Source of the DNA: Thalia democratica
Taxonomy: Eukaryota
Length of the DNA: 64,000 nucleotides
Assembly: GCA_965202585.1 (NCBI GenBank)
Contig: CBDBBG010000087.1
Location: 1-64,000 of the forward strand
Reading direction: 5' to 3'
The position numbers and the translations under genes were made by a program. The notes beneath the pieces are model-generated. The model was given only the letters and a program-made list of their open reading frames with translations, was not told the origin of the DNA and searched no databases. Below, one piece after another: positions 1 through 57,742 of this stretch (position 1 is its first letter; each line of letters opens with the position of its first letter).

Positions 1-1899
1 AATTCTGATATTTTATTAGTTGCAGTGTACTTCAAACGGCTTTATTTTAGGCTTATTTTAGGCTTTTAGGCTCATTTTGATTGTTCTTTTTGATTTTCAT
101 ATCTCGCCACTTACTCCTTTAACAGCAGACTCAAAATTTTGCAAACACTTTGTTGAGTAAAAAATAAGTTGTGTTGTATATGTTTTGAAACAAGCTTTAT
201 TTTTTTTTTCTATTTTAGTTTTATAATGTTACAATTTAAGATTGATAATTAACAGGAAATTTTATTACGTTTAGGTTTACATGAATTACTGAAGTTTCCA
301 TAAAAAACAACTACTTGCAGTAGTATGAGAAATTTACAGCTTTAGTATAAATAAAATCAGTTTTCAAAGTACATAATCTTTAAAAGTTGTGCTGTATTAT
401 AGTTAACGTTCAGTAACAAATCTTTATTGAAAATAACAATCAGTAAAAATAATTCTTATTTCTAAAATATTTTACTTTGTTGCATTAAATAAAAAGTTTT
501 CATTTTATTAAGAATATTTTTTTTGTGTAATGTTTGTATCATAACATAAAGTTTCAAAAACACTTTTTTTTATTTTAATTGAGTTTTGTTTTTTATACTA
601 TAGTTCACTTTAAAACATTGTTTAAATGATTTAAAATGTTTTAATAGCTTTGAATTTAGTTGTGCAATTAGAAAATTTAGCTATGCACAATTGTTTACTT
701 TAAGCTGCAGAGGGGAGTGATTATTAAATTTATAAAAAAGTCATAAAACTTTATACCAAAATAAAATATTATGCTTCAAACTGGCGTAGAAATTTTTATT
801 TTTATTAAAGTTACTATTGTCGTCGTTAAATAATATTTTAAGGTAGCTGAGCAGTCGTGATTTAATAAAATTTATTTTTGAACTGCTTTAAATTAAAAGC
901 TTTATACTAAGAACATTTATTAATTTTTGAAAACACTGCTTCAGACGAACTAAAATTTATTATCTATTATTTAACTGACAATATTTCAAATACATTGTTT
1001 CTGTTCAGTTAAATTTCTCTCCTATCAAAAAACTATTCACTACAAGTAGCACTCCTTTTTTTCATTATGTTTTAACAAGATAAACTACACAAAACTAACG
1101 TTTTTATCAGTCTTGTTTTAAAAATAATATAATTTTCAATCAAGAAACAAAGTGAAAATACTTAGTCATGTTTCATTTCGACTACTAAAGTCGTACTAAA
1201 GACTATTAAAGTCCTGGACAAGACGTTAAAAGGTATCAAAGTGGTGTGCGACTTGATAACCGAAAGTTTTCTTCGTATACCCGTTCCAAGGATTAAATAT
1301 TTTAAGCGTTTTTTTATCGTTTAATGAACTATAGTATTGAAATAATTTATACTTGCTAGCAAATAAATGGAATTAGAAATACTTTACTCGATGATAAGTG
1401 TTTTTAACTTTAATACTATAAAAACTTAAAAAAACTTTAGCCTGCAGAACACTTTTTCCTTTTAGGCCTGCGGAAAATTTGGATGCCGAGCGCTTATATA
1501 TATCAAAGATTTTATTTGCGAATTAATTTTTTTCATTTTTCTAAGTCTAAAAGTATGTTTTATAAAAAAAATTAAAAAAATTGTTTTATTTACAATTATG
1601 ATCTCGTTTTAAGAAACTAAGTAAGCATTAATCATTAAAGATCTAAAATAACAAATTAATATATACCTTTTATAGGTACCATTTAAAGCCGTATTACTAA
1701 GAAATTTTTTATAGAAAGATTTTTTTGGTCAAAAATAAAATTATCAGAAACACGCACATGTTTATCAGAATCAGCATAAAATTAAAAAATCTGGCAAAAT
1801 CGCCATAAATCAAGAATTTTTCGTTGCCTTTATTCCTTGTGTCAACATATCTCACCACTTTCTATCCCCGTTGACTTGTAAATACCCCCTTATTACGTA

Positions 1900-2330
1900 T
1901 GACAGCCACTTAAAAGATAAAAAGCAGCGACTTTTAACGACATACAAGTCGCACTTCTCTCTTGTCAGCAGAAGCCACACACGACAGTGAAGGAGAGAGG
2001 CGACAGAAGAAGCGGCTTTTGACGTCGTTGGAAGAACTTTGTGACGTCACAAGCAAAAAAGTGGTCGTTTACTTTTTCTTCTTGTTTGAAACTTGTCCTT
2101 ATTGGTTCTTAGCTCCGATCGTAACGAGATTGTATTCGAGATTTCGCCATCAAGTAGTTGGCTTCAATTGCGTTTTGTGACATCACAAACTAAAAAGTCG
2201 TATTTTGCTTTCGTCTTATTGTTCGAAACTCGCGCCTTATTGGTTGTATTTGCTCCGCTCCTTTCGAGATTGTTTTCGAGATTCCACCGTCGAGTAACTG
2301 GCTCAAATAGCGTTTTTGTTTCGTCGCAAT
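1900..2330. promoter_or_regulatory. CRE/CCAAT-rich promoter-like element with an internal 136-bp tandem duplication (single partial copy at 29640-29890)
   Basis: GTGACGTCAC at 2041 and GTGACATCAC at 2177; each unit contains CCTTATTGGTT. Confidence 0.55.
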
Positions 2331-3244
2331 TGTAATGAGTATGAGATCATTGTATTTATGTTTTTCAAAATTTACTATGAAATTTAAATGACAAATACTT
2401 GTAGGAGTTTTTAAGCTATATAAGCGTGTTTTATTAATAATAAAATGAGAACTTTTTTTTAAATATTTCTTGCTTTACATTGTTTCTAAAAATTACGAAC
2501 AACTTTAATCAGTAAATATTATAAATTTAAATCAATTTAAACTGCTTGAAAAACGCTTTATCGAAACACTAAAAGTTGAACAAAGTAACATTACAAACAA
2601 ACTTTCAACAATTGAAGCTATTAGTTTATGACGTATACTTTAAAAAAGTCAAAAAAAAAAAGAACTTAAGATACTCTAAAGACTAAATTGAATACAGGTT
2701 TTAAAAATGTAAATAAATTTTAATTCTAAATTTTAAAAAGCTTAACAGATGTTTATCAGTATAAACGTTTTACGTTAAGGAAAGTAGTATAAGAAAATTA
2801 AGCTTATGAAAGTTACTAGTTACAAATTTGGACAAAAGTTCATAAAATACTTTTTCAAGCTTTGTATTTATTTCTTTTAAATAAAACCACCGGTACTTTT
2901 AACAAGGAAGACTATCCTGGCAACGAAACGAGAAATTACATTAAGTTTCGAACTTGTGATTGATGGGTGAATAAAAACTTGTTTTTAATTTTTTTTTTTA
3001 ATTTTCATTATTACTCAGTTTCTTGTGTTACTTAATTAACATCTGAAATTTGCAACATAATTAGAATCGGCTTACTTCTACCACGGACTTTGTAAGAAGT
3101 TTTTAGAGTTCTTATAACTTGCTGTTGTTTAATAATTTATTTAAAAAGTTATAAAATAGTTTGATACAAAGTTCGTCTCGTTCCGACAACTCACTAAAAC
3201 AATTTAATCTTCTTTAAACTACGGAAGTGATAACTGACAGTTTT

Positions 3245-3375
3245 GTTTCTAAGCAACCATGCCACCTTAGTTGCTACGTGAGATGAGATCCGCGCTTATC
3301 TGCTTAATTTGATTACACATTTACTTGTCCGTTGCTTAGCAACCGTTGCCAGCGAACAAAATGCTTGAAAAGAAA
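3245..3375 (+). promoter_or_regulatory. Module D copy in ghost paralog P1a
   Basis: AAGCAACCATGCCACCTTAGTTGCTACGTGAGA...TTATCTGCTT; X-box GTTGCTTAGCAAC at 3331-3343. Confidence 0.72.
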
Positions 3376-3909
3376 CGGTTTTGTCAGTTTAGCATGTATG
3401 ATGTGTAATTCCACTGGTTACTAGACACTTATTGTTTTTATAAGTACAGAAACATACTTAGTACATCGATCTTGTTTTATTTAGATTTTATATTGTGTTA
3501 GATATGGTAATAAATATGCAATTTAATAGCAGAACATTTTATTAAATTTTAATTTTTGATAAAACCACTTTAGCTTATTAATATGTGCTGTACAGAATGT
3601 ACTGTTTAAGTTTCAGTGGAAGTTATTGATTTGTTTCATAGTTTCTAAATTATCAATTTTATACACATACACTTAAGGGAAATTTAAAAAGTCTGGCTTT
3701 TAATAAAAACATAATCCTTTTAAAGTTATACAACTCTGTGTATTTGTTTACATTAAAAGTTACTAGAGTTTAAAGCTACAGTGATTTAAAATATGAATAT
3801 TTTTTTGGTTACAATAAACGATACGCTAAATTCAAGGAAACTTAGCGGCTAGTTACTTAAGGTTATAGGTCTTTTAAAAGTAAAAACATGATAATTGTTT
3901 GATATTTAC

Positions 3910-4561
3910 CAGTGGCGTCGCGTGGTATTTTTCTTAGGTGGTGCAGAAAAAAAAAACCGAGTTGAAGGTGATCGATTTGCCCCTACTTGAGTTGTCTCTG
4001 CTCGAGTTGCCTTTGCTAGAGTTGCTTCTGCGTGAGTTGCTTCTTCTCGAATTGCCTATTCTCGAGTTGCTTCTTATCGAGTTGCTTCTTCTTGAGTTGC
4101 TTCTTCTCTAGTTGCCTTTTCTCGAGTTGCCTCTTCTCAAGTTGCTTCTGCTCGAGTTGCTTCTTCTCGAGTTGCCTCTGCTTGAAATGTTTTTGCTCGA
4201 GTTGTCTCTGCTTGTATCGCCTGTGCTCTGCTTAGATTTGTTTTCATTTTTTGTTTACAATAACTTGTGGAATGATACTTAAACCTCTATTTTTTCAGGG
4301 AACTTTCAACTTAGCTTACTTACCGCAAGATATTGATTTTGCGGTAATTCTTGAAGAAATTTTGCTGTTTTGAGTTTATTTGCGGCAGTCAGCTAAGAGT
4401 TTGCGGCAGTGAAGTGACCAAAATGGTCGTTTTCTAATTTGGAGTTTAATAAGAGATTTTGTTCTAAAAACTAACGAAAACGTACTAGATACTTAATTTT
4501 TTCTTAAACAATTTTAAGGTGGTGCAATTGCGGCAGTGCAACACCCCACGCGAAGCCAATG
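3910..4561. mobile_element. Non-autonomous hAT-type element (MITE), 652 bp
   Basis: TIRs are CAGTGGCGTCGCGTGG and (reverse complement of the right end) CATTGGCTTCGCGTGG. An 8-bp TSD ATATTTAC lies at 3902-3909 and 4562-4569. The paralogous site near 31670 is empty (single ATAATTAC). Confidence 0.9.
3986..4212. repeat. 15-bp minisatellite (consensus CGAGTTGCTTCTTCT), about 15 units, inside the MITE
   Basis: Directly visible tandem units; they explain the SCFFS-repeat ORF at 4032-4235. Confidence 0.92.
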
Positions 4562-4754
4562 ATATTTACTAAAATAAATTTACATACATTTTTAGCTTTG
4601 ATAAGTATTTGCTTTTATAAGGACTAAATACATAAAATAGGATATTTATACTACTGTTTTAAATGATTTAGAACTGAAATGAAGGCAATAAAGTCAAGTT
4701 AAAGTTAAACACTTTTCCTTCGGAGAGCAACAATTGAATTTTTTAATCTTAGAA

Positions 4755-4900
4755 CCAACTCAATCATTAACAGCTGGTTTCCACGAAAAAAAAAAGATTC
4801 ACTTCCTGTATGACGTAATAAAAGAAACATAGTTTGAATTTAAAATACTTTGGTGACCACTCACTCATCGTTTGTATAAGCCACTAAGCGAGGGTTAATA
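4755..4900 (+). promoter_or_regulatory. Module E: non-coding remnant of exon 2 in P1a (other copies at 31865-32000 and 43545-43690)
   Basis: CTCAATCAT..CAGCTGGTTTCCACG...AGATTCACTTCC..T.TGACGT aligns with coding exon 20417-20251, but the frame is broken. Confidence 0.7.
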
Positions 4901-5271
4901 CTCATAAAAACAAAGTTGTTATTGATTTGTGATTTTTCTAAAAAGTTCAAAGTTTTTAACTTTTTTTTTCAATTTGTATATTTCTTGTTTTCCTTTTAAC
5001 TTTGCAGATGTTCATACTGTTTCAGTAGCTGATTTTAATATTTTTTGATGATTTTATTAAATATTGACTAATTTATTTTTTAGTAACAAAAAAACTAATC
5101 AACAGTATCATTAAAGTAAAAAAACTACTTAAAAGTTTTGTTTAAATATTTTCTTTTTAATTTTAATGTATAATTAATTTTTTGTTTTGTAATTTTAAGT
5201 ATTATAAACTATTGAAAAATCTTCATACGACTTAAAAATTTAATTAAGTAGAATATCTCCCTTCCTGTTTG

Positions 5272-5500
5272 ATTATCAACCTTTCAAAGCTGCTACCCTG
5301 ATCGACAGATTGGGCGAGAAAGAATATCGTTGCCAGGGAAACGCGTCAACGTGATTACGGTGAAAAACTGTGGACAACATCAGGTTTAAAAGGCAATCGA
5401 GTTTCAATCTCGCCCTTTTTGAGTTGCTTCTAAAAGACTTATTTGAATTTGCGAAGCAATGGTAGGTAAATTGAAAAAATAAACGAAGTTTCTTTGCAAA
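5272..5500 (+). promoter_or_regulatory. Module F0 with X-box (other copies at 32338-32572 and 44118-44340; degenerate at 52295-52400)
   Basis: GTTGCCAGGGAAAC at 5329-5342; the P2c copy has GTTTCCATGACAAC at 52333-52346. Confidence 0.65.
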
Positions 5501-6129
5501 CTCATCAGACTTAAGTGTCGAGAAGTTGATCATTTCTTTTTCAGCCTTTTTGCTTGCAAGTATTTTATTATCTGCTACAAGTTATTAAAAAATGCACAAA
5601 CCCTTTTTTCTTCGAGTTTAAGAAAAACTGTAGTTTTGTCGTAAACCTAGTAATCTATTTTTATTTAATAACAGTAAAATAGAACTAAATGAAAAGTAAA
5701 ACACTTAACTATTATATCAATATGAAGTCATTAAAATTTCTCCAACTATTTTTTCAAAGTTTTAAAGGCGGCATAATAAAAAACAATATTTGCAAAACGA
5801 GATTACATAGCATAAAAACACTTAATAACAACTGTCAAAATTTTCATCTTACCACTTTACTTATAAGCAACTTTCAGCTTTTTTTGCTTATTATTTCTGA
5901 GAAATAAAAATACCTAAAAGCCTGTTTATACAAGCAAGCGAATTAATCCACTGAAATGTTGTGAATATAACAGTTATGCTTATAATCGACTCGATGTTCG
6001 ATGTTGTGGTTTCTTACAACTTTAATAATTGTGAGCCACACGAATTTTTCACTTCAGCGGGTACCAACGAAACTACTAATGCTTACTGAAGCTCATATGT
6101 CATGCCTCGTTCCTTGATTTAAAACTTTA

Positions 6130-6620
6130 CTGTCACCTTCTTCTGCTTTTCATTGACAACCTCCGTAGTTGGATTTATCATAAATTTATCGATTGACGAG
6201 AGCTTTCTCGTTTTGTCCAAGTTTCATTTTAAACCTTCGGCATATTGCTTACTTTCACGACGATAATTTTTTACAAAGCTAATGCGAAATCGAAAAAATG
6301 GCTTGCGAGAGTAAAATTTTTCCGATCAAAATGCAGCAGTATAGTAAAAAAAAAACTGTCGAAGATGCTTACTGAGGCTTATTTTTATTTCACAAAAGTC
6401 ACAACTTTTATACGGCTGTTTTCCATTGACAATCTCCGTCGTTGGATATTTTTGAAGTTTATCGATCGACAACAGCTTTCTCGTTTTGTCCAAGTTTCCT
6501 TTTAAACCTTCGGCCTGTCGTTTACTATCACGGCTTTTTGTTTTGGCGAAGCTAATGCGAAGTCGAACGAATGGCTTGCGAGAGTAAAATTTTTCCGATC
6601 AAAATGTAGCAGTGCTGTTT
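6130..6620. repeat. Tandem duplication, period about 273 bp
   Basis: CATTGACAA at 6151 and 6424; TTTCCGATCAAAATG near 6320 and 6592. Unit 3 has one copy near 45890. Confidence 0.85.
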
Positions 6621-6829
6621 AAAGTGCGTTTTGTTGATTTAGAGCCAGTCTGACTAACGTAAAAGCTAAGATTTCTAAATCATAGTCAAAATAATTACAA
6701 AAAAAGTATATATAGTTATGTTCTGTATTAAACATATAAAAGTTTGAAGTCAATTTAAAATCATCTGTAAACTTAAGTGTCTTTAAATTAAAAATTTGAA
6801 TTTAGATTTTAAATATACGTAATCTTAGT

Positions 6830-7060
6830 ACGACAGATTGAACTAGGAAATTTCAATTATGAAAGCCGAAGTCAGATTTCAGACTTCAATTTTCTTCATT
6901 TCAAGTTCTGAGTTTTTAATTTCCAATAATTTAAATGCGACATTTAAAGTTGTGACGTGTAGATTACGACAATTCCAAATATGGGTAATTCAAACTACGC
7001 AAATGTAAATTACGTCAATTCAAATTACAAAAATCGAATTTACGAAAAACTTCGTCAAAT
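6830..7060. repeat. Degenerate short-period repeat, probable transposon remnant (paralog at 46245-46500)
   Basis: Recurrent AATTCAAA(C/T)TACG and CGACAA units, similar to the ends of the 59268-59701 element. Confidence 0.4.
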
Positions 7061-9719
7061 TAAATGTTGGCATCTCATTTTCTTAGTTCAAACAACCAAC
7101 TATAAATATATGTTTGTTCATTTGATATATAACATTTTGTTCAACACAACTGTTTTATTAAAAAATATAAAATGTTTTGTTTGGCCCTTAAATAAAAAAT
7201 AAAACTAGCATTTTTAAATCAAAAAATTTTTTATTGGGATGTCAAATTTAAAAAGCTCTAAAACATTTAAAGCTCATACTATCTATATGTAGTACTTTTA
7301 AAACAAATGCCTAAAGTTTTTAAATATGTACTTGAAAAGTATTGAAATTTGTTTGAAATGAAAAACATTTTAAGTTTATATTGAAAAAAAAATATTAAGA
7401 ACTGTTTGTTTTATTAGCAATTTCAAACACATCACTTTACAGTTTACAGCCTCAAGATAAGACAAACCAAATAAGCCTTAGGTATTATTTATAAAATTTT
7501 TCAAGCATTTTGGTTTTTTTAGTCTGTCTAAGTTTACTGATTGAATACTTGAAATATAACTTAAACAACTATAATTAAGTTAAGAATAAAGTTAATATTT
7601 TAAAGTAAAGTACTTCTACACTTGATTTAAACTTAAAAAATAGTAAGTTTTTTTAAGTTTTAAAATGCTTTGTTTTTTTTTTATGAAGTTAATTTTTTTA
7701 GGAAGTCAATTTATAATTATTTTCCATGTAGATTTTTGTGATGGTTAGCTTTTATTGAATCTTTTTATAAACCTAAAAACGATTTAAAATTTATAAAAAT
7801 ATATATAAACTGACTATCAAAACCAAGGTCACTCAGATAACCAAGTTTAATAGCCTAAATGAAACATAAAAATTCTTCTCTTAAACTATACTTTTTCGTA
7901 ATTTTAGCTTAATTTTGTGCCAAGCAAGCTTTATAAATTGAGCTTAACTTTATTTTCACCATCAGCTCGATTACATCAATCTTGTGTGCGCACATAAAAA
8001 TAAAACCTAACTTATTTACCCATGATTTTAACAATTACCACCTAAAAATTGTGCAAAAATTTTTGCGCTTATTCTACCATATACAATGATTTTCATCAAC
8101 TGTTTAACTTATTATATTAAAACAAACAGACTATCTAAAATAGACTATTAAAAATTAAAAAAACAAATATTTTCTTGTTTCAAATTTTCTAGTAGCATAA
8201 TGATGTTTCAAGTATATTTTTAAAGAACAAATTACTGCAAAATTTAAAACTCAGGTTTTAAACCGATAACTTGTGCAGGTTTTCTTGGATCATAAACTAT
8301 ACAGAAATGTAAGAAGTTTATATAGTTTTAGTAGAAATGAGGCTATTAAAAATAAGCTTTGTTTTTACTTATCAGTTTTTCTGTTAATTTATCAATAAGT
8401 TTAAATAATCGTAAATTACTTAGTTAAACTTATTTGTAAATTTGTTTTTTGTAGAACACTTAAAATCGTACTTAATGTAATTTAAACATACTTGTAAAAC
8501 AAACAAAGAAAACATACGAAAAAATACTACAACGGATGTTTAGAAACTAAATCTCTGAAAAAAAAAAACTGTTTAAAGCTTTATTTGTTAAGAAAAATTC
8601 ACACAGGATATTTTCTGTATAAAATATCACTTACTTTTTACAACAACAAGTAAAAAAAGTTAATATTATACAATTCTCAATTAACGTAATATTACTGAGT
8701 AGTTTTCACAGCAAGCACAAGTCAATATTTCCGTCAGAATTTAAGCTTGAATTACATATATATGATCTCGTTTGCATTTTCTCCTTCGGTGGTCAGTTTG
8801 AAAATGTTGCTTAATGATAAATTTTATAAAATCTAGGATTTTAAGCGTACGTAAATATTTTTCAGAAAGACATTAGAGTGTATAAACGTTATAGATAGGC
8901 AACTTATACATTTAATTCAAAAGTTAATCATTTAACATAAGTATTAGATTTAAACAATAAGTTATTTAAATCGAAAAAATTACAAAAATACTTTATTAAA
9001 GGTCTTAAAACTTAAGAAAAATGTATTTGACAATTTTGGCAGACTTGAATGATTTTCAAAGTTGCCGAAATATCTTAACTATTATTTAATATATTAAACG
9101 ACAAAACCAATTCAATTAAAAAATGCTTGATCCAAGGACCTAGTGTGTAAAAAACTTTCAGTTGACAAGTAGTACACTAAATGGATACAGTTTAGCGTCT
9201 TCTCTAGGACAATTCAATGTTAATGCGCAATTATAGATGTGCACAAATCAAGCGATTATTAAAGATTTATGACTTAAAATCAGAAAGTATAATATACAAA
9301 ACTAATTATGCGTTAAATTATAAAAAAGTTAACATACTTGAATATTTAAGGCTTGTAGAGTAATAAGCTTAGAAGATAAATTGAGTTTATATAAATGTTC
9401 GAACTTAATTGCTTTAAATTTTTGTGACTATTTTTTTACAATCACCATACAATAAACACTTCCAAAATCTATTATTTGAAATATAAGTTAATTAAATCAA
9501 CAAGACTAGTTTATATTAACCAAGTAACTGAAGATTAAAGACAAATACTTAAACTTCTATTATTCTAAAAACATAAGATTTGATTTAAAAAAAGAATACA
9601 ACAAAAAAGCTTTTACAACGAACTCATAAAGACTGTATCGAAAAATGTTGCATTAACAATTCCTGACAAGCAAGTGAACTTCAAAAAACAATTTCAAAAG
9701 TTCAATGAAAATTCAACAT

Positions 9720-10130
9720 TCGAATATCGACGAGCAAAAGGCGGCATTCTGACGAGCTGCGCAATTTTCAACTCAACAATAAAACAACCAGCAATTTTCT
9801 ACGACGAAATTCATTTCCCCCCTCTCAAAGCGACAACACAACAATGAAATCTCGAATTTTCTTTCTCAGTTTCACGAGTAACAAGGCAGCTTGCAAGTGA
9901 ACGAAAAGCGAAAGGGGATAATCTCAGCAAGAAAAGAAGCAGCGAAATTAGGTGAGGGCAAGTTATATGTGAATGATTGGCATCAATTTTGTTTTTTTTT
10001 CTAAAAGCTCCTTATGCCGTTAATTAGAGAGGCAGCGAATATTTGCTGGCAGCGGAGGTTTACTGTTGGCACGATCAACACAAGAAGCTCTAAGGTGTAT
10101 TTCGTGCGCCTTAGTAACCTTTCACCAAAC
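9720..10130 (+). promoter_or_regulatory. Module B, inverted copy (orphan promoter region P2a)
   Basis: Near-identical to the reverse complement of 23830-24050. Confidence 0.75.
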
Positions 10131-10439
10131 GTCTTTGAAAAGTTTTAATTTTAATTCATGTCACCGAGATATGTCATGATGGTAGTACGTTTTCTTTGTT
10201 TATACTTTTTATTATATTTGAATAACTGTAAATTAGAGGAAATACAATAATAACAATTTTGTGCAATAAAAAGTTTATAAGTCAGTTGTAAACCGTTTTC
10301 TTTTCTTTTTTGATAAAAATGAAACATGTTTCTCAAAATAAAATTAGTGCATGAAGCTGAAAATTTGAAAAGTTTCCTTCTGAAAAAAAAAATGAAATAC
10401 AGTCGAATAGCTTCATATTGATTTCCGAACACAAAGCTA

Positions 10440-10920
10440 GAAACGTCGCCGACCTCGCAGGCTTTCACCTCGTCTTTTTATCTGCTTCTAAACGCATCGA
10501 GTTTTCAACACGAGGTGCTACCACACACAACGCGTCAATTACCTTTTTCCGCCAATCGAGCGCTCGGTAGATAGGCTTATTTTTGGCGAAAAAACGAAAA
10601 CAAAAGCAGGTAGTTAGAATTTAGTTAGTTTACGTTTCGTTTGTTTATTTTGCATTGAAATTGTTCGCACAGCGTCGTGCTGATCTTTCACTTTTTACAC
10701 TGCACTTGCTGATGTGAGGTCAAATTTTATTCTTTTCGCTGGCGATTGCCGATCAATGACGACCGCGCGATTTTCCGTGGCGCGGTGATGCTTCTGTCGT
10801 AAAAAAATTGTCAAAAATAATTTAGCAAATTTCATCACCGCTTCTAATGCGTGGTCGTGATTGGTCGTGACCGTCGTCGGTTGTCGCCGTGGCTGATTTC
10901 GGTTGCCATGGTAAGTACAT
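10440..10920 (+). promoter_or_regulatory. Module C, inverted copy (P2a)
   Basis: GTCGCCGAC, GCTACCACACACAACGCG and GTTGCCATGGTAA match the reverse complement of 22860-23355. Confidence 0.65.
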
Positions 10921-12189
10921 CGGGTCACGTAGTTTGACTTGAGCTCTTAATAAAAAGTTCTAAATAATTCTTTTAAGTTGAAAAAGGTTTTTAACTTTTT
11001 TTCAGAATATATTTTTTTTTTAAGTTTTCTCTTTGTTTGTCTATACTTATCTAGAATATTTTTGTTAAACTTAGGTACTAATGTTCAAAAAATTTAGTTC
11101 AAAAACTTAGTCTACAAAAGGTTGACACTCTAAAAGTTATTACTGTGGATTGAATTTTACTAATTATTTTTAACAAAAAGTTATTTTAATAAATGTTATT
11201 AATATTATGTAAATTGTCTAATAAGTAAACTTAAAAAAATGTTTTTATGCAAATTTACTTTAGTAAAGTTTAATACTTAAAGTAAAAAAAAGTAACAAAC
11301 AAGATTATAGTTTATGTTTTTTATTTACCTTTTCTACAATCTGTATATTGCTATTTGTAAAATCGATTTATTGAAACTGAAAATTGTTGTATTTTAGCTT
11401 TTATGCACAAATTTTGAATATATAACATATATATATATATATTATTATATTATTATTTTACTTTAATAAAAAGGTAATAATACTTTTTTTTTTCTAATTT
11501 ATTTCATTTACTAACAAATAATGAAACAAAAGGAGAATTTCAATTTTTATTTCGTTACTGGTTTCGGTAGCCTAAACACCGACCTTGACAAAAAACAAAA
11601 CAGTAAATAGTATTGAAAAAGTGGCAGTTACAAAAATTTATACTTAGAAATCGTGGAAAAAAAAAAACTTGTAAATTTATAATTACAAAGTTAAACGAAA
11701 TTTAAAGTCATAGAATCAGAAAATAACTAAAAATTAAAGAGTTAAAACACACAATAGAAACTATACCTTACTAGCAAAATTTGATACAAGTAGACATTTA
11801 TACTGTTGTAAATATATTTTAATTTTTATCTAGCTTAAAACAAATAAAAAACGGTAGATAACGCAGCAATACTCTTTTTATTTGATCATAAAAAACTTTA
11901 GATAATTATATTTACTAATGAAATATTCATTACTCTTTAAATCTTTTTAATAATGTTAATTTATAACAGAAAAATCTAGTTAAAAAGTCACATAAAAAAG
12001 CAGCAAAATAAGATACATTTAGTTTAATTTCTTAACAACTTATAGAATAAGGCAGAATTCACAAAACAAGCCTAACTAATTGTTAAGATTTTCGAATATA
12101 ATTTAAAAGATTTTATATAGTTTAAGCGCTTACAGAGCAGAACAAACAACCTATCCAATTAGCTACAAGTAATTCAGTTTTAGTTTTAA

Positions 12190-46000: not shown

Positions 46001-48089
46001 TTTTTTTGTTATTATCATCTCGATGTTAATGCAAAATTAAAGGAAAGCTTGCCAGAGTAAAAGTTGGTTTTATTGAAAATTTTAAGCAGGAATGACATAT
46101 AAAGTGCGTTTTGTAAATTAAGATAATCAAAAACAAAAAAAAAAGTATTTGTAGCAATATTTTGCGTTGAAAATAAAAAATTAAGCTCAATTTTAAACCA
46201 TTAGTCAATCAAAGTTCAAATTAAATTAGTTAGAAAGTTTTTAAAACTCCGACAACTGTAATACGACAGATCAAGTTATATAAGCCGAAGTCAGGCTTCA
46301 TACTCAAGTATCGAATTTTTAATATATGCTAATTTAAATTTAATACTTAAGTTCTGACATTCCAAAAATACGACAGTTCCAAACACGATAATTCAAACTA
46401 AACTGTTTTGAATTACGAACTTTAAACTACGTAATTTCAAAATACAAAGATTGAATTTATGAAAAAATTCGTCAGTTTAAGTTTTGACATTTCAATTTAT
46501 TAGTTCAAACAACGACACTGTAAAAGCTAAAGCATAAGTATCTGTTAAATGTTTTGATACATAAGCTTTGATTCAAGAAGTATTCCGTTAATAAACAATA
46601 TTTTTTTAGTTGTTAAATAAAAAATAAAAGTATGCAGTAATAAGACAAAAAGAAGTTTTAGTTAAATTTATTAACAAAAATGTTGAGTCTAAGAATCAAC
46701 GATTTCTGGTATCATGTATATAGTGCTTTTTTATAAACAATTTTTTAAGGTATATAAATATTTCGTATAAAAAAATTTAAACCTTAAAACATTGTAAGAT
46801 TGTATTTAAAGTTAAAGGTTCTGATTTAAATTGTTTGTTTGAATAAGAAATTTCAAACACATTATTTTACAGTTTATAGACTCAAGACAAAGAGAACTAA
46901 GTATGTTTTCATAAATTTTAAAGAACATATTATTGTTTTTAAGCTGTCTAAGTTTAATGTTAAACATCCTAAACAATAGTTTAAAGAACTTAGGAAGGAA
47001 GTTTATCTTTAAAAGTGAAGTGGTTCTACATTTTACACCTAGGGTTTAGACCAGAAAAATAATAAGTTTATTAAGAAGTTTGACAGTTTAATCACTATCT
47101 GTTTCTTTGTAAACTTAATTTATTAGAAAGTCAAGTTGAAATATTGTTTTTAATTAACCTTTTTGAAGATTAGCTAGAACTTGGCATGTTTATGAATGCA
47201 ACAACAGTGTCTAATTTAAACAACTTGAAATATATAAATACTAACCATTAAAGCCGATGTCACTCGGATAACTCAGTTAAATTATCTACTTAAAACACGA
47301 AAGCAGTAAACAAACTTTTTCATTGTTTCAACAAAACTTCGTGCCAAACAAGCTGGTTTTATAAACCCGATTTCATTTTCAGTCTCAGCTAAACTGGACG
47401 ACCGAAAAATACTTTGAGTCTTTATATTTTTTCAGTAAAATTTAATAACTACTTATCACAATAAAGCATAAGTATTCAAAGTTGGTTCGGAAATCAGGGC
47501 ATAATTTGTGTAGATTGAACTTCATATTTTAGCTAGTATTAATGAATGGTGTTGAAAGAAAACTTTCAATTTTCAGTTAAATTCTTAAATAAACGAAACT
47601 TAAAAGCAATTTGACACTTATAGTTGGTTAAGAAATGTGAGCATTTATTGAAATAAATATCAAAGCTTGAATCAAGGTAGGTAAAAATACAACATTTTTT
47701 GCATTAATTATACAAAATTTGTTAAAGTTAGCTACTTTAAGCTAAATAGCAAACAAACATATATTAATAATGGAGTTTATGGAACTTTACACAACTAGTT
47801 GTTTGTATTTTTTGTGACCTACTATTTAAAATACAATACTACAAAGTATTCTACAGTTTACTTAAAAATAAAGTCAAGTTTAGTAAAACATTTGTGAAAT
47901 TTTCTAAAGAACAAAATCTTAAAAAATATTTAAATACGTTTTATTCATAAAAAATGTTAATAAAATAAGAAAAATTGTACAATTAAAGAGCTTTTACAAC
48001 AAACTCATAATAATGCCTAGAAAAACATTGAAATAATAATTTCTGACCAGCTAGTAAATTTTCGAATATAGTTTGAAGATAGTTCATCT

Positions 48090-48550
48090 AAAATTCAACA
48101 TTTGAATATCGACGAGCAATAGGCGGCATTCTGACGAGCTTCGCAAATTTCAACTCAACAATAAAACAACCAGCAATTTTCCACGACGAACTTCATTTCC
48201 CCCCTTCAAAGCGACGTCACAAATACGAAATCTCGAATCTTCTTTCCATCTTTCATGAGTGACAAGAGATAGCAGTTTGCAGATGAACGAAACGAAGGGT
48301 ATTATCTCAGCAAGATGAGAAGTAGCAAAATTAGGTGGGGGCAAGTTGTATGTGAATGATTGGCATCGACTTGGTATTGAACTCACTTCAGCTTTTCTTC
48401 TAAGCAAAAGCTCCTTATGCCGTTAATTAGAGAGGCAGCGAATTAGCAGCGGATTTTTTGCTGGCAGCGGTGGTTTACTGTTGGCACGATCGCCATAATA
48501 GCTCTTAAGTGTATTTCGCGCGCGTTAGTAACCTTCCACACATACGTGTT
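48090..48550 (+). promoter_or_regulatory. Module B upstream of P2c
   Basis: Direct match to 9720-10130. Confidence 0.72.
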
Positions 48551-48854
48551 TCAATAACTTTAGTTTTGCTTCTTATCACCGAGACATGTTATGACGGTAT
48601 TACGTATTCTTTGTTTTCAACTTTGATTCTACTGGATATAAAAAAAAATATGTAACTTAAAAATCAAAACTTTAAAGTAAAACATTTAGAGCTTATAAAT
48701 CACTTTTAAAATACTTTTTTTGTGCCTAAATAGATAAAAAAATTATTTAAAAACCAACTAGCGCATGAAGCAGTAAACTTGAAAAAATCCTTATGACAAA
48801 ATAAAAAATGAGTTACAGACGAAAATCTTTACGTCTATTTCCGAACACAAAGCT

Positions 48855-49245
48855 CAAAACGTCGCCGACCTCGCAGGCTTTCACCTCACCTTTTTATCTG
48901 CTTTTAACCGCATCAAGTTTTCAACACGAGGTGCTACCACACACCATGCGTTAATTACCCCTTTCCGCCTATCGTGCGCTCGTTAGATAGGCTTATTATT
49001 GGCGAAAAAACGAGAAAAAAAACAAATAGTTAAACTTTAGTGAATTTACGCTTCGTTCGTTAACTTCGCATTGAAGTTGTTCGCACAGCGTCGTGCCGAT
49101 ATTTCACTATTTGCACACCACTTGCTGATGTGAGGTCAAGTTTTTCTTCTTTACACAGGTTATTGCCATCAGAAGAAAATTAATTACCATGCAAACTTTA
49201 AACACATTTCAATTTGCGACTAGCATTGGTTGCCGTGGAAGCTAA
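48855..49245 (+). promoter_or_regulatory. Module C of P2c
   Basis: Direct match to 10440-10920. Confidence 0.65.
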
Positions 49246-49942
49246 GTATTGTAAAGGTCACGTAATTTAGAAGTTATAATTAGGCTTTTAGTCTTTTTTA
49301 TTTTAAGTTTTTTCGTTTTTATATTTAGTTTTGATTTAGAGGGATATTTAGATGTGTTGTAGTTTGATTTGTTAAAAATGGTTATTAGCAAAGTTCAAAG
49401 TACTGTTGATCTTTTTTACAAAGTATTTTAAAGCTGGATTTTGTAAAAGTATAATAAACTAAATCTTTTACAATTGTTAATTTATATTTGATGTGTGTTT
49501 GTTTAATCTAAACATTGTAGATCAATAATTTCAGTTTAATTGTTGTTTTAATTTTAGAACATGTGTACATAACAATAACCTTAATTGATTGTTATAACTT
49601 TAATAGTAGTATTTAAAAAAAATTACAATATCGATTTTAGTTACTTTGCTATTTATTTTATAATGTCTTGAGAGTGATAAATTAAAATTAAGTACGAATC
49701 ACTTAATTTTACAAAAGCATAAAAATAAAACATAATTGGTCATTTGTAACCTTTAAACTATTTTCTGCTAATATAAAAACTTTCTGATCAAAAAATTACT
49801 AACTACTAGATATTTTTTTATTGTACAACCTAGTTTTACTTATTACGTAAAACTCTAAAACAAATTTATTATAATTAAAAGTTTTCTAAAATAATTGAAA
49901 CATTTTATAAAAAAAGGAACTAGTTTTTTTTTAAAGTAATTA

Positions 49943-51964
49943 ATGGATTCTTCAGCTATTACAGATGTTTCTCCCAGTTTATCGACAATTTTTAGCCAAT
50001 CAGGTGCATAGCATAGGGATATTTTTTCCTCAACCCGACTTTGTCAGTATGTGGGTAACTACCCGGCAGCTATGTTGCCTGGTAACCCTTTTCTTGAGAT
50101 ACTTCGCAAATTACCCCTAATTTCAGTGGGATTAATTATGCTTGGGCTAAACATAAAAACGGTGATGAATATTCGAGGTTCGACCCGCTACATTTTGAAT
50201 GCCAAAATCAGGTTAATTAGTGAGTTCTTAAATGACCTCGACAAAGAAATAAGTAAGTTAGGTTTTTGATAGAACTTTTTTTTCTTCCCCATTTAAATTA
50301 AGTAGAATTAATTTTTTAAAGTATCGAATAACTTAGGAATTCTTTAGAAATAGTTTAGCTTTTTCTCGCCAATTTGTGAAGTTCGATGTTTTTAGAATTA
50401 AAGTTGTATAAAAAGTTCTATGATAATACAGCTATGATAAATAATACAGCACATCAAAGCAGCTTAAAATGTGTTTTAACTCGTATTTTAACTGCCAATA
50501 AAGCTTACTTATATTACTACACGTTTAGCTGTTTAAATAAAAGCCGTTGCCATTAACTTTTCAAAAACCTATCAAAATAACACGTTTGTTTTTTGACTAA
50601 ATTAAAAACAATAAAATAAAAAAAAACATCAGAGTTGTCAGGTTATTTTTAACTCATCATACAAAAATTTAGACTAATTTGAAAAAAAACGAAAATTTTT
50701 ATTAAATTAGCAGGACTGTTTTAGAGTAAAAATAAAAGTGCACATAGAGTTTAAAAACATTAGTAAAATTAAAAAAAAAACAATTTTGCCAAACATACTT
50801 CAAGAAATTTATTCTTTTTGATTTTTTTTATGTCTGTTGAAAAAAAAGTCTCTAGCCCCATTATAATGAGTTTTGTTGTTTTCGATCAACTTCAGACCTA
50901 TTTTTCAACAAACTTAGTTCTTTTGTCTATCATCAGTACAATACCGACGGTAAACTATTATCCTGCTTTTCACCGAAGCTACTTATCTGTCAACTGAAAA
51001 GATGAACATTTGACACCATTTTTGCAGATGAACTGCAAAGTCACCCTGGTTGCCACGTGATTAGTTGTCACGTGATAGATTATCTGATGAACGATCGCGT
51101 TACCATGTTGATCATTTCGTTTTTATCTCGTAATTATTAAAAATAATTAGTTGATCAAAAGTATTTGTTGATATAGTTACTTATTATTCTTCATAAGATG
51201 TTACTTAATGAAAAATGACAGTTTTAGTTTAATTTATTGACACATGGCTAAAGTGTTTTAGATATTTTTGTTGCGTTTTATCTACATTTGAAAACAAGCC
51301 TAAACGTGTACAATGATTAAATGAAAATGTAGAGAAAATTTTGCATGTACAAGTTTTGTATTACCACCAAACAAACCATTGCCTTTTAAGTTTGCAAACA
51401 TTGAACCTGATATACCAGAAAAATTCAAATCAGAAACAGGAAAATATGATGAACTTTCCAAACTTACCACTATTTGAAAACAGCACATTTTCTACGGAAG
51501 TATTTTTTGATGTGTTCAAAATTCTAGCGTTAAAGAAAGTATTGTTAATAATTTTTATATTGATAAAAGCTTATTTTTTGAGTACAAAATAAATGTTTTA
51601 AATTTACAACAAAGTACTTTAAAACAAAAATATATATATGAAATTAAACTAATAATGTTTTTTTATATAAATATTTGGTAAATTGAAATTTAAAACACAC
51701 AATAAACCAAAATTTAATAAAAATTTTATTTAAGGTGTTATAGAACTTTTCAAAATATACAACTTTTATCCACAACAACTATTAACTTTAAAACTTTGAA
51801 ATTTTTAGTAGCAACCATAATCTGGTCATCACTCAGCAACAATCAAATTCTACTGTGACGTCACCAAAACAAAAGTTTGTCTGTCAAAACAGCCAACTTC
51901 TGGTATCAGAGGACTACAGCCCAGAGTTCCAGTAGCAACGGGGTGGAAACCGACAACAACAACG
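49943..51964 (+). pseudogene. Decayed exons 1 and 2 of the plus-strand paralog P2c
   Basis: 49943-50219 aligns to gene A exon 1 (MDSSAITDVSPSLSTIFSQSGA*), with TAG at 50009-50011 and frameshifts. 51812-51964 aligns to exon 2 but is 153 nt (frame-incompatible) and has an in-frame TAG. Confidence 0.85.
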
Positions 51965-53350
51965 GTTGGTCATTATAAAATTATTAATGTGGAGGGACAT
52001 GTTGAGAAATCAATGTAGATTTAGCTGTCTAAGCTGTTTTTTATATAATCTTTTTATAAACAATTACTACGACGATGTACAAAAGGTTTGAGACAAACTA
52101 AAACATTTTTTATCAAATAGTAAGTCTACAAAAAGAAGTGGAATAATTTTAAAGTAGGTTACATTCAAGGGGAACTGAGTAATTTTTTATGTAATTCCCC
52201 AAGCAAATGAACAACAGCTTCGAGCAAAAATCTGATTTTGCACGCTAAAGATTTTAAAATTTCTCTATAACTTGTTAGTTGACCCTTCAGAAAATCAAAC
52301 CCCGATCTAAGAAAGCAACCAAATAACGTTCGGTTTCCATGACAACGCACGGCGTTTGTTTACGGATGAAACTCCCCTGTCAGATTGGCTACCACTCGAG
52401 TATTTTTTCTCCTTTTTTTTTATTATTTGAGATCGCTTATACTTTTTGCCTGAAGTTTTGTTTTAGATAATTAATTATCAGTAGAAGTGTAGGGTTGTTT
52501 TACATGTCAAGTTGTTTTTTGTTCTGTTTCTCGTTTCACTATTGATTTTTGACGTTTTTTTAGCAACGAGTTAAAAGTTCACAGTAATCTAAATTTCTAT
52601 CAAAAGTCATTTTTGCTGCGCATAGGCAATTTTGCGCCTAAACTAGATACAATTGACAAGTTAGACAAATTCTGATTAATCTTCTCTAAATCCCGACTGT
52701 ATAGAACTACACACGGTGAGCAAAAATGCCGCTGTGTTCAGAAAGACTTTTGACTAATTATTTTCTAAAATTTCCAGACACAGCAGAAAGGCTTCTCACA
52801 TCGCGGTTGTTACGCGTTGCAGTTTTCAAAAAACAAAATGCGCGAGGAGTTTTGTAAGGTCAATACAGACGGGTTTGCTGCCAACATCGCAGATAATTTT
52901 GTGTGCAAAGGGATTATGAATTTGCTTTTTTGTTTTTTTCTTTTCAATCATTTTGCTCGAGGTTGATGTTTGCCATGCCGTTTCTCGAAAGAATTGACCA
53001 GGAATATCGATTTTACAAGAAGCCTTTTCGCTACCCAAAATTTCAGGGTTATTTTGGTTGAGCTAAAAAGAAAGTTAAAAACTTAGAACGCACGAAAGAT
53101 AAATGTCAGATTAAACCACGAAAAAGCTTAAAGCTGTAAATTATGATATGAGTGTTGTTTTGTGGTTTTTTAGATATATCAAGGATAAAAATGTTTACAT
53201 AAACTTTGATTTCAAATAATCAGTTTTCAAGCAAAGAAAAAGATTAAGGCTTTTGAACATCTTTTAAAGCTTAGTTCTTTTTCTTCGTTTTAACTTTTTG
53301 ATAGAAAATTAAAGGAAAAAATAATTCAGGTTTTATTGCAGATTTTAATT

Positions 53351-55950
53351 ATGCAACTAACAAAACGTAAGTACGTAGAAGAAGTTACTTTAAAAAAAGG
53401 CTAAAAATGTTTAAAATTAGAAACATGTTTTTGTTTACAACCTTGTTGAAGAAGCTTATTTCTGCAGTCGCGATAAAATACATGAAAGCGTGGTTAAGAA
53501 AGTCTTACGCAATCGCTTTCGACACAAATCATTATGACGTCACGATAAGATGTTTTTGATGTGCGGGTAAACAGCGAGCGATAGGCGCGAAACGAAATTG
53601 ATTTACTAATACAAGTGTCGATGTTTGTATACCGCTCGCGCGTTGACACCGCTAACATTTTTTGTAAAAGCAGCAAGGCGAATGTTTTGAATCTGCTGTT
53701 TAAAGTTGTCACCAGCGACAATTACTGATTACCGCTTCCATGGTCCTTACATAATCCCACTACCGTATTAGCGATTTACGGCTTAGCTGCTGTCTCATCC
53801 GCGTTGCTGAAGGTCACCATTGGCTCCGTGTCTAATTTATCGATTGACGAGCTTCCTTCCCGTTCCAGTTTAGAATTAACTTCGTCGGGTGCTATTTTGA
53901 CTTTGCTGAAGAAATTTTAAGTTTAAACTTGTACAAAAATTTTTGTACTTAAGTTAAAACTTAGCTGTCGAGGAATTAGTTTATTAATAAACATTTTTCT
54001 CAGAGAAGTTTGAAAAGTTAAGTGTCTATGATTAAGTTTTAAATAATTTTGAATATCAATTATTTTATTATATATTTACTTTTTTGCTTGGTGTTTCTAT
54101 ATGTAATTTCGTTTAATTTAGTTTTAAACTTTAATTTTTTATTTTAAATAAGGACAGTAATTATGAGTTGTTTTTTAGAATAAGTAATTTCAGGTTGTTG
54201 AGGTTATAAAGTTTTATTTATGACAATTAAAATTACAATAGTTAACAAAAAAAAAAGTTACGACAACTAAATTACTACAATTAAGTTTCATGACAATTCA
54301 ATGTGAAAATTCAAACTATTTCAACCATAAAAACAAAAAAATAAATACTTTTATTCAACAACACCTTATTTGATTGTTTATTTTATTGACTTAAGAAAGG
54401 AAGAAAAATTCTCTTTTGGCAACTTGTTTTTGATATTATGTAATAACTATATATTTTTGCCTAAAGGTCACGTGAGCAGCTCGGAGGTAGAAGTGAAGAA
54501 GGACGAAGGAGGAGAGGAGTTTTTGGAGGTGACTTGCGGCGACAACAATGCCCTCCTCTACATCGCAAGACTCAGCCAGGGTAGCAAAGGTGGGTAGTTA
54601 AAATTAGTTCAAATAAAAACATTTTTTAGAAGGAAGCAGAAAGTTAAAGTATAGATTAGTAATCTATTTATGCGCTTAGTTATAAAAGTCAAAACTATTC
54701 ACAAACATATAGTTTTTAGAACAAGTTTAGCTATTTACGAATGTACGTTCACTATATTTTTTGAGCTTACAGAGTAATTTTAAAAATTTTTTAGCGGCTT
54801 TTATTCTTTTCTTATGTAGAACTATTGAATAAAAATGTTTAAAAGGTAAGTAAGAGTCTAAACTATATCTTATAAACTTGTATGTGTATTTCTTATACTA
54901 ATAGAGCAACAGCTAATAACACTTATCTGAATTTGTATGATAAAAAAATTAATTTCACTCATAAAATTGGCAAAGTTATTGCACTTGTTCAGATAGTACA
55001 ACGTTACAAATAGCTCGAAAGGTTTATGACCTTTGTGTTGCCATTTAATTAACCCACTAGCAAGGCGCGTATTTAAAATTTATAAAAGGAAGAACTACAA
55101 ACGAATAAAACGACTCACGCTTCTCGTTTAATCTCATTACTAACAGTGTGTCGTCTTTTCCATAACTTTACGCACTGCAGTATTGCGAGAAGTTAGTTTT
55201 TACAAGCACAGAATTATTTTTGTGTTAACTCTAAAATTTGTCATAAAATTTTATCTAATTTTCTTTTAATTCGTGTGCGCTGAATTATGCTTTAACTAGA
55301 ATCGGTAGAACATACTTTTAAGGTTTTTATTTCTCATGATCAAGCTAAAGAAAACATCCAAGAACTTTCAAAAGTTCATAAAATACAAAAAAAAAACAGC
55401 AAACATCAATCTCTTTCATTAACTCAGGCAAGTCAATTTTGTACGAGCTTGGGGACAAGCAAAGCTGGATGCACCCCAACGAGTTCCAAGCGATAAGCGG
55501 GAGGGAGACTGCCAAGGATTGGAAGAGGAGCATCAGACATCACGGGAAGAGTCTGAAAGCTCTTATGTCAAAATCGGTGATCATTCATCATCAGAACGAA
55601 TGCGAATGTGAGTGGTGTCTGAAAAACTCTGCTTTGTTTACTGATTCTGTAAGTGTTTTCAATCTTATAAGTCGTTTATAAAATGTAGTGTAGTAAAATG
55701 TAGGTTTTACTTATAGAAAATTCAAACACTTCTATCTAAACTTTCTAAACACACTTTACTTAGTTTGATATATTTATTCAAATCATTTAAATATTTTTGG
55801 ATTAATAGTCAACATTTATATAGATTATATTATTACTTAGAACTAAATTTTAAAACACAGGGTAAACTTATCGAAGACGCAAATAAAATAAGCCACATAT
55901 ATCTATCAACCCTCAACAACAACAAAAACCAAGATGACGTAGCTGTCTGA
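53351..55950 (+). CDS. P2c SAND-domain gene; predicted 149-aa short form MQLTKR-HVSSSEVEVKK...SAND...NQDDVAV*
   Basis: The SAND exons 54467-54589 and 55428-55648 are near-identical in protein to gene A (high confidence). The first coding exon 53351-53366 (ATG, donor GTAAGT, phase 1) and the last exon 55861-55950 (TGA) are inferred. Confidence 0.6.
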
Positions 55951-56231
55951 CAACCGTTGGTTTCGTTGCCAAGTAACTTTAACATGTCCCCTTTACCCGT
56001 GATGGGTTTCAACCAATAAAATTCCCTTTCGCCGATACAAGAATTAACGACCACTAGGAGCTCTGCTTTCACTTTTGTCCGACCATTATTAAATAAATTA
56101 GCTGCTTTGCATAAAGTTTATGCAAAAAATGACTTTATTGTTTAGGGAAAAAAGTAACTAAAAGAATAAATTTTGTTACTAGACTTTTGTAACAATATTT
56201 AATTGAAGTTTGCGAACTTCTCAATATGCAG

Positions 56232-56748
56232 CCAAAATCTATTCTCCGGAGAAATCTTCTTCATCTAAACCTGCGAAAAAAAACAAGAAGAAGTCCGAAG
56301 CAGTTCTTAAATAATAAATTTCTACTAAATACCCCAAATACAGATGATGATCAAGGCAGTGGTAAAAATCAGGTTAAACATTTCTATATTTAATATGTTT
56401 AAATTAATAAAAAATAGACTTATTTCAGTTTAAACATTACAGATGAAGTCACAAAACGATATTATTGATATGTATTCTGCTGCTAAAAAGAAGTCAATTT
56501 ATCAAAACGGTTAGTAAATAGAATAAAGAGTTATAATTTTTAGTTTAAAACATAGAAAGTACGTTTTAAGATCTTTTACTAAACATCAAAAACAATATGT
56601 GATTATTAGTTAATTTTCGAAAATAAATTAAAAAAATTATTTTAGCTGTATTACGTTGTATGGCAAATAGAAATTATTGTAAAAATCAATAATTTGCAGA
56701 ATCTTCGTCGAAATTAAAAGAAAATCCAGTCACTTTTGAACACAACAC
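56232..56748 (+). CDS. Three downstream P2c exons homologous to gene A exons 6-8
   Basis: 56232-56372 (141 nt), 56443-56509 (67 nt) and 56700-56748 (49 nt) have GT-AG sites, open frames and compatible phases. The last two equal gene A exons 15323-15257 and 15114-15066 in length. ESSSKLKENPVTFEHNT aligns with DFLSNLHENSINFDHKQ. Confidence 0.5.
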
Positions 56749-57742
56749 GTAAGGAAAACTGTTATTTTAATTTATTTAATGTGAAATTATTCAAAGCTGT
56801 CTTTTTAAATGTTCAACAAGATCGTTCTATGTAAATATTTCTGTCAACATTTTAGCTAATAAAATATACATTTAAATCGTTAATGTTGTTATTTGTTTTA
56901 ATGCTTTTTTTTATGCACGTCACATTGTTCTTACAAAGAAAACAATCTGAATTTTTAATAAACTATTATTTAAAAAGTGTTTATTAAATAATTGTTTAAA
57001 AGTATCAGACAAAAATAACTAGTAATTGTTTTAGTTAGAAAATTTATGACGTTTTACAAAACGCTTTTGCTATCGATTTTTAAGCTTACAAAAATATACA
57101 AAACTAGATATCTTCATGTTTGAAAATTTACAAAAAAGAAATTCTAGTGTACAAACTTTTTTTTAGACATAACTCATCATATAACCTACTAAAAAACATA
57201 AGAAACAAAGCATACAAAGAAAACACTAAAGTTAATCTGTTTCTTACCTAACAATATTAAAAAAAACACATTTTGTTATTGTAATTTGTACAAACATTAA
57301 ATTTAAATGATATAACAGAATACATTTCATTTTTCTTAAATTTATTTTAGTACTTTCGTAATAACGCTCATCAAAAATTGTATCTTACTGAGTTAGAATG
57401 AATAGAAACTGAAATAAAGTCATACTAAAGTTTAAAATATAAAATTAGTAAATAATCTAATGTTAAAAATCAACTAATTACTTATGCTGCTGTATACATT
57501 TGGTATACTAATAAAACCCGTTAGATTGAAAACAATCTAAAATAAAGCAGCGATAAAAATTAAAAATAAAACTACACTTTAAAATAAAACTTAACAAGAA
57601 ACTAATTACTATAATATTACTTAAAATAAGGATTTAAAAAGGTTAGTTTGGTATACGAACTTTTTCTGCTTACATAAACTGGGCCTTCAAGATTGAATAC
57701 ATAAGGCTTCCAGAATATGCAGTTGAAAAGAGTTATCCGCTC

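Follow-up and report, generated by a model that had tools for sequence, protein, structure and literature searches.

A SAND-SAM gene array on a gapped, unplaced scaffold as a probable slice of a lineage-specific SAMD11-like cluster

Vertebrate SAMD11 and SAMD7 each exist as a single gene and act as cell-identity factors associated with Polycomb. Human SAMD11 combines an N-terminal SAND domain, which binds DNA, with a C-terminal SAM domain (PMC11450717). It is described as a component of Polycomb repressive complex 1 (PRC1); association with this complex and transcriptional repression are known only for vertebrate SAMD11 and SAMD7, from work cited in the same source (PMC11450717). In Ciona, the SAND-to-SAM gene is single; filamin lies beside it, and an array is absent from the surrounding 10 kb. 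In the current annotation of Ciona intestinalis (AP043578.1, 6.93-6.96 Mb) this gene is split into neighbouring models on one strand, of 488 amino acids (SAND) and 590 amino acids (SAM); older models join the SAND and SAM parts in a product of approximately 1141 amino acids. Here we describe an array of related SAND-SAM gene segments in a window of 64,000 nucleotides (bases 1-64000 of the unplaced scaffold C96; assembly size, 801.8 Mb). An earlier note on this DNA, made from the letters alone, had read it as a nested tandem and inverted array of at least seven segments.

The window is AT-rich (approximately 28% G+C) and contains two gaps of 100 N each, gap 1 (32573-32672) and gap 2 (57743-57842). 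It is thus composed of three contigs, 1-32572 (contig i), 32673-57742 (contig ii) and 57843 onward (contig iii). Its segments are designated P1 (spacer), P2 (plus-strand gene type) and A (minus-strand gene type), and their positions are listed in Table 1. We read the window, with a probability of roughly 0.78, as a slice of a lineage-specific SAMD11-like cluster that would have grown by segmental duplication of a P1-P2(+)-A(-) block, C96 being either a second haplotype that has diverged or a duplicate of very recent origin, and the calsyntenin gene at the right end of the window being misjoined.

The SAND-SAM cluster extends from 79.9 to 80.2 Mb on chromosome scaffold C1. At least 14 close copies of the exon SAND b (83-99% amino-acid identity) are present genome-wide: ten of them, distributed over both strands, at C1:79.91-80.19 Mb, single ones at C1:82.06 Mb and C2:22.45 Mb, and the other two in the window. 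SAM b exons number 14 in the genome. The locus thus differs from that of Ciona in having at least 14 clustered copies instead of one gene, and also in its more diverged SAM domain (36-40% identity to Ciona). A separate SAND+SAM gene at C1:52116752-52123973, whose SAM domain is 50% identical to that of Ciona, is probably the direct SAMD11-like ortholog (C1:52.117-52.124 Mb). One cluster copy (L003, C1:80082629-80082822) carries a stop codon within SAND a, so that at least one member of the cluster is a pseudogene.

To place the family, the SAND b exon was searched against 1.84 billion representative proteins. The best long matches were full-length SAND+SAM proteins, and every full-length top match that was scanned with Pfam contained both domains. 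Among them were uncharacterised proteins of Ciona, Phallusia, Clavelina and Styela and a sea-urchin protein; the named homologs were SAMD11 or SAMD11-like proteins of turtle, rodent, amphioxus and sea slug (Elysia), and a few lower-ranking matches were named DEAF1 or were Sp140-like. The closest named relatives are therefore SAMD11 and SAMD11-like proteins rather than DEAF1, GMEB, Sp100/140 or AIRE. As in vertebrate SAMD11 and the SAMD11-like proteins of Ciona (LOC100176298) and amphioxus, a SAND domain with the KDWK motif is followed by CxCxxC and a long linker, with the SAM domain at the C-terminus, and SAND b is 62-66% identical to its tunicate, turtle, rodent and amphioxus counterparts. 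The earlier note had set the array against the two vertebrate genes. SAMD11 is the correct family name; a vertebrate frame for the array was rejected, as the best full-length homologs are tunicate proteins. The source animal is probably a pelagic tunicate, judging from these matches and from the marine metagenomes in which the sequence occurs. In a search of sequencing runs, none contained more than 34% of the words of the sequence, and the locus was found in no RNA run.

Exons were each searched alone, and SAM a and SAM b were scored separately rather than as a whole SAM domain. The Pfam SAND domain (PF01342) was detected in gene A (E=1.6e-14) and in P2c (E=3e-14); the KDWK DNA-binding motif is present, and the peptide contains SGRETAKDWKRSIRHHGKSLK. 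SAM a of gene A, the start of the SAM domain, passed the SAM_2 model with 20.9 bits (cut-off 20.5), and SAM b aligned in tblastn to the SAM region of homologs P0020, P0022, P0158 and P0163, with E-values down to 9e-10. With tunicate homologs as queries, tblastn recovered both SAND exons and both SAM exons (a and b of each) in gene A and only the two SAND exons in P2c. All exons listed for gene A are open. No SAM exon of A' or P2c was found within the assembled window sequence. The 8-codon deletion in the N-terminal exon of A' is shared with the copy at C1:80158364.

Table 1. Positions of array segments, exons, shared blocks and colinear C1 intervals in the window (C1 coordinates, where given, belong to chromosome scaffold C1).
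Feature	Position	Strand	Basis or remark
P1a spacer unit	1-5499	+	79-88% identity to P1b; left end is scaffold start
P2a, stub of P2-type gene (upstream region and module B 9917-9995)	6078-10924	+	ends against 3' flank of gene A
Gene A, SAMD11-like SAND+SAM gene	12769-25928	-	Pfam, tblastn, open exons
P1b spacer unit	25930-32572	+	ends at contig end; internal tandem duplication
Assembly gap 1, 100-N placeholder	32573-32672	.	P1a homology stops at left edge, gene A homology starts at right edge
A', 5' half of A-type gene	32673-39428	-	71-84% identity to A; 3' half expected in gap 1
P1c, most diverged spacer copy	39749-44732	+	66-72% identity to P1a and P1b
P2c, inverted P2-type paralog	45815-56750	+	tblastn, open SAND exons, trees
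Interspersed repeat ending contig ii	57302-57742	.	>35 copies, 84-88%, many scaffolds
Assembly gap 2 between array and calsyntenin	57743-57842	.	C1:54443816 match begins at 57843
Calsyntenin gene, 3' part, outside array	57843-64000	-	Pfam CLSTN_C in 58326-58550(-)
Gene A SAM b	12769-12957	-	tblastn
Gene A SAM a	13169-13267	-	tblastn, SAM_2
Gene A middle exons	~15300-15960	-	open frame
Gene A SAND b	16324-16515	-	tblastn
Gene A SAND a	17772-17966	-	tblastn
Gene A coding exon 2	~20251-20419	-	open frame
Gene A N-terminal exon	21850-22125, ATG at 22125	-	open frame
Gene A module B, 5' exon with donor	23895-23985	-	conservation
Gene A upstream region, G+C-richer	to ~25900	-	
A' N-terminal exon	34777-35028	-	open; 8-codon deletion, in frame
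A' module B	36772-36862	-	
P2c module B	48293-48384	+	
P2c N-terminal exon	49943-50216	+	one stop plus frameshift
P2c SAND a	54458-54594	+	intact
P2c SAND b	55427-55618	+	intact
P2c middle exon	55882-56085	+	two stops
A/P2c inverted block, module B	23806-24021 / 48252-48468	-/+	self-blastn
A/P2c inverted block, N-terminal exon	21837-22125 / 49943-50233	-/+	self-blastn
A/P2c inverted block, SAND a	17787-17923 / 54458-54594	-/+	97% identity
A/P2c inverted block, SAND b	16304-16517 / 55425-55638	-/+	93% identity
P1a exon-2-like module	4753-4819	+	similarity to A coding exon 2
P1c modules	43545-43607 and 44646-44732	+	match A 20353-20419 and 19504-19593
Colinear with C1:80194631-80188058	12397-19000		92% identity
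Colinear with C1:80180000-80175301	28389-32572		81-97% identity
Colinear with C1:80159154-80150001	34241-43376		92% overall; 99-100% over 36595-39588; up to 100% in 300-nt windows
Colinear with C1:80148465-80144308	45003-49190		85% identity

Repeated segments within the window were determined by self-blastn and repeat finding, with self-alignment identities of 64-97%. All seven segments of the earlier note were found in the order given there, and the repeating block P1-P2(+)-A(-) that it had proposed exists. The P1 spacer (5-6 kb) is present in three copies, P1a (1-5499, cut on its left side since base 1 of the scaffold is the start of the window), P1b (26212-32572) and P1c (39749-44359). P1b is 79-88% identical to P1a, and P1c is 66-72% identical to either. 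P2a (6078-10755) and P2c (45815-49171) share 64-77% identity, and A (19553-25928) and A' (32673-39428) share 71-84%. Four or five inverted blocks, a middle exon among them, are common to A(-) and P2c(+), with E-values far below chance. Private to single units are a tandem duplication inside P1b (26006-27075 and 27302-28365, 79% identity) and an insertion in P1a (3910-4557), which is an interspersed repeat with more than 40 copies genome-wide (82-91% identity) and is absent from P1b. This element is approximately 650 nt long, contains a 15-nt tandem array and is inserted in P1a only.

The proposal that all segments are derived from genes is weaker for P1, whose kinship to the genes consists of three short modules (58-90 nt, 75-82% identity) arranged in the order and with the spacing of the 5' half of A. 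Approximately 60 nt from the start of coding exon 2 are kept by every P1 copy, those on C1 included (L019, L026). In the window this block is located at 20350-20419 in A and at 4753-4819, 31871-31928 and 43545-43607 in the P1 copies. It carries CAGCTG and TGACGTCA, and is possibly a regulatory element inside the exon.

The relationship between copies was analysed in trees of SAND b ±600 nt, of the N-terminal exon with flanks and of module B ±400 nt. P2-type and A-type copies formed separate clades with 100% support in all three trees, which answers the question raised in the earlier note whether the P-type and A-type copies would separate. The inverted duplication that distinguishes A from P2 is thus old and precedes the block duplications. 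Gene A is sister to C1:80190543 (branches of 0.04 each, approximately 8% divergence), and A' is sister to C1:80156503 around module B (branches of 0 and 0.006); A and A' are approximately 29% apart. P2a is sister to C1:80170876 in the module B tree. As the latter is also a stub, truncation of P2a predates the duplication that gave rise to both. P2c pairs with C1:80137674 in the SAND b tree, with long branches of approximately 0.3 each, and with C1:79958391 in the N-terminal exon tree, again with long branches. The units of the window are therefore not each other's closest relatives, and a local triplication is not supported.

The order of segments in the window recurs on C1. When read in reverse from 80.195 to 80.134 Mb, this region contains an A-type gene, P1, a P2a stub, an A'-type full gene, P1 and a P2-type gene, i.e., the order of the window at 83-99.7% identity (colinear intervals in Table 1). 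In addition, window 4603-12390 is colinear with C1:80168522-80176185 (83% over 7.8 kb), and both the junction of P2a with the 3' flank of A and the adjacency of P1 and P2 are found again on C1 (L019, L026, L030). The loss of the P2 body from unit 1, as described in the earlier note, is hence a real truncation. Independent assembly of the array on C1 supports its reality and its order across gap 1. The body of P2c is only 64-81% identical to two other P2-type genes, and P1a-P2a has no counterpart above approximately 84% on the compared pieces of C1.

Both gaps are located at informative positions. The earlier note had recorded the gap between P1b and A'; it had overlooked that homology stops at the edges of this gap, and also gap 2. 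P1b ceases to match P1a at 32572, and A' begins to match A at 32673 (corresponding to A 19553). The points that match these edges are separated by 14.05 kb within unit 1 (5499 to 19553) and by approximately 14.3 kb on C1 (80175301 to approximately 80160950). The corresponding C1 interval contains a P2a-type stub (module B at 80170876) together with SAM b (80167952), SAND b (80164193) and SAND a exons of a gene whose 5' half matches A'. Given this interval of approximately 14 kb with its SAND and SAM exons, A' is most simply explained as a full gene that is cut by gap 1 and not as a relic of the 5' half. At the other end of contig ii, the SAM exons of P2c would be expected beyond 57742, past gap 2, since both gene A and the counterpart of P2c on C1 have their SAM exons approximately 3 kb past SAND b; the missing SAM exons of P2c, too, thus fall together with a contig end. 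On C1, A' and P2c each have a complete gene as counterpart, in which SAND and SAM exons are present.

The calsyntenin contig matches C1:54443816-54449976 with 96.4% identity, beginning at the first base past gap 2. The 1.44 kb that adjoin this match on C1 have no counterpart left of the gap, and relatives of contig ii are found at C1:80.14-80.16 Mb, 25.7 Mb away from the calsyntenin counterpart at C1:54.44 Mb. The adjacency of P2c and calsyntenin, which the earlier note had taken as the end of unit 3, is probably a scaffolding artefact, as an N gap, preceded by an interspersed repeat, lies at the join and its two sides have counterparts so far apart.

Selection on the copies was assessed by comparing non-synonymous (dN) and synonymous (dS) divergence. 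The SAND peptide is identical in nearly all of 13 copies compared. In SAND b, dN is approximately 0 and dS is 0.3-0.9 among copies. P2c differs from A by ten synonymous changes and one non-synonymous change in SAND b and by four and none, respectively, in SAND a. dN/dS is 0.3-0.8 in the N-terminal exon and 0.06-0.3 in SAM b. Because the SAND peptide is kept while synonymous sites, N-terminal exons and spacers diverge, these comparisons show that the predicted copies, the SAND exons of P2c included, are under strong purifying selection.

The DNA of SAND a (54458-54594, 17787-17923) is 97-99% identical between P2c and several A-type copies, and the flanking introns are unalignable; dS of SAND a is 0.08-0.25, compared with 0.3-0.9 for SAND b. 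This near-identity suggests either gene conversion limited to the exon or constraint on synonymous sites. Between A (16324-16515) and C1:80190543-80190734, SAND b has 12 synonymous changes (dS 0.46), and dS of SAM b is 0.075. Exon phylogeny is star-like, and that of the flanks is hierarchical. From the near-identity of SAND a despite lost flanks, and from the disparate dS values of SAND b and SAM b, we infer that gene conversion limited to exons would act in the cluster.

The array is a real, if ordinary, part of a gene-family cluster specific to its lineage, and several inferences of the earlier note were confounded by assembly gaps. That note had assumed that a block was triplicated in place, that its copies then met four fates (intact, rebuilt, promoter-only and enhancer-only) and that the array ends at calsyntenin. 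The segment order does fit three units, P2a is a true stub whose junction recurs on C1, and in P2c the N-terminal and middle exons are decayed and the SAND exons intact. A triplication in place is nevertheless very improbable, because the family has at least 14 copies in the genome and every unit has a nearer relative on C1 than among its neighbours in the window. With respect to the fates, A' and P2c are cut by contig ends exactly where the missing exons should follow, and the border with calsyntenin lies across gap 2. Two of the four fates and the array border thus fall on contig ends of an unplaced scaffold, and should not yet be read as biology. Even less credit, close to none, is due to the idea that the units represent haplotypes that were left uncollapsed, or one unit that was duplicated in the assembly. 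The scaffold is indeed unplaced and gapped, but its units carry private insertions (that in P1a and the internal duplication of P1b), and the same multi-unit order was assembled independently on C1. Haplotypes of one another were rejected as an explanation of the units, which differ by 12-35%.

It is unlikely, albeit less so, that C96 is a genuine separate locus, i.e., a recent segmental duplicate, derived from the right-hand end of the cluster on C1 and truly located beside a duplicated 3' part of calsyntenin. Divergence from C1 is mostly 4-17%, which is above that of typical alleles, P1a-P2a and the P2c body have no close counterpart on C1, and calsyntenin differs by 3.6%. However, stretches that match C1 at 99-100% over 3 kb lie among divergent ones, a pattern expected if a polymorphic array is present in two alleles, and two independent duplications from places 25.7 Mb apart would have to meet at an N gap after a repeat. 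C96 resembles haplotigs with chimeric joins in that it is unplaced, has contigs with near-identical colinear counterparts on C1, and is joined by 100-N gaps, one of which follows a repeat and separates the two distant matches. It differs from haplotigs by its patchy identity (70-100%) and by one unit without a close counterpart. Some points weigh against our own reading of C96 as part of a SAMD11-like cluster, be it a second, diverged haplotype or a duplicate that arose very recently. Its identity to C1 varies, from 99.7% to approximately 70% in the P2c body; this, together with the lack of a P1a-P2a counterpart above 84%, implies that C96 is not a simple haplotig. The C1 cluster was compared in alternate 10-kb pieces of C1:79.87-80.22 Mb, which amount to half of the cluster. 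Genome-wide DNA searches scored only some of the candidates, and their lists served for coordinates and not for absence; one such search missed a 92% match that is seen by direct alignment. Finally, the gene models are predictions based on homology and open frames, and P2c has stops in two non-SAND exons, which weakens its coding status.

The duplicated blocks are like other clusters formed by segmental duplication with respect to repeating multi-gene blocks, mixed orientations, stubs, spacer relics, unit-private repeat insertions, mosaic identity between copies and shared junctions. They are unlike them in the unusual uniformity of the DNA-binding domain, the SAND peptide being nearly invariant despite dS values of up to 0.9. 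In the history that we favour, an old inverted duplication gave rise to A-type and P2-type genes, and later duplications, presumably by unequal crossing-over between units, copied the block P1-P2(+)-A(-). One block type would have lost the P2 body prior to its duplication, leaving the P2a stub. C96 would represent either a second haplotype that has diverged from C1:80.134-80.195 Mb or a duplicate of this region that arose very recently; from C96, approximately 14 kb with a P2 stub and the SAND/SAM half of A' would be missing at gap 1, and the calsyntenin contig would have been attached to it by a scaffolding error. Judging from the vertebrate family, the copies may be chromatin repressors targeted to DNA, with a common DNA specificity and differences in their other parts.

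With respect to how gene families and chromatin regulators evolve, it is a real, albeit modest, curiosity that a sister group of vertebrates has a cluster of 14 or more copies in which the DNA-binding domain is frozen. A further interpretation is offered tentatively, as its chances are rather small: a Polycomb-linked regulator of SAMD11 type would have been amplified to at least 14 genes with an invariant SAND DNA-binding surface and fast N-terminal divergence (dN/dS 0.3-0.8). P2c-type copies may then be SAND-only competitors for a shared DNA site, and P1 relics, which keep only the 60-nt block with an E-box and a cAMP-response-element (CRE)-like motif, may be shared enhancers.

Module B resembles a 5' exon; it has an AG|GTGAGG donor and shows 89-98% conservation among its copies (23895-23985, 36772-36862, 9917-9995 and 48293-48384); approximately 40 nt beyond the donor are also conserved, as is a nearby block that contains TAATTA. 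Rfam and tRNA scans of the window gave no match, and module B is therefore not a known RNA gene. A stretch of 488 nt just upstream of SAND a of P2c (53802-54289) shares 98% identity with C1:79885863-79886349, which marks the extreme left of the cluster and where no SAND exon was detected. The interspersed repeat at the end of contig ii is an element of approximately 440 nt. Another element of approximately 117 nt, present in dozens of copies with 92-97% identity, is located in a calsyntenin intron (approximately 63300-63417).

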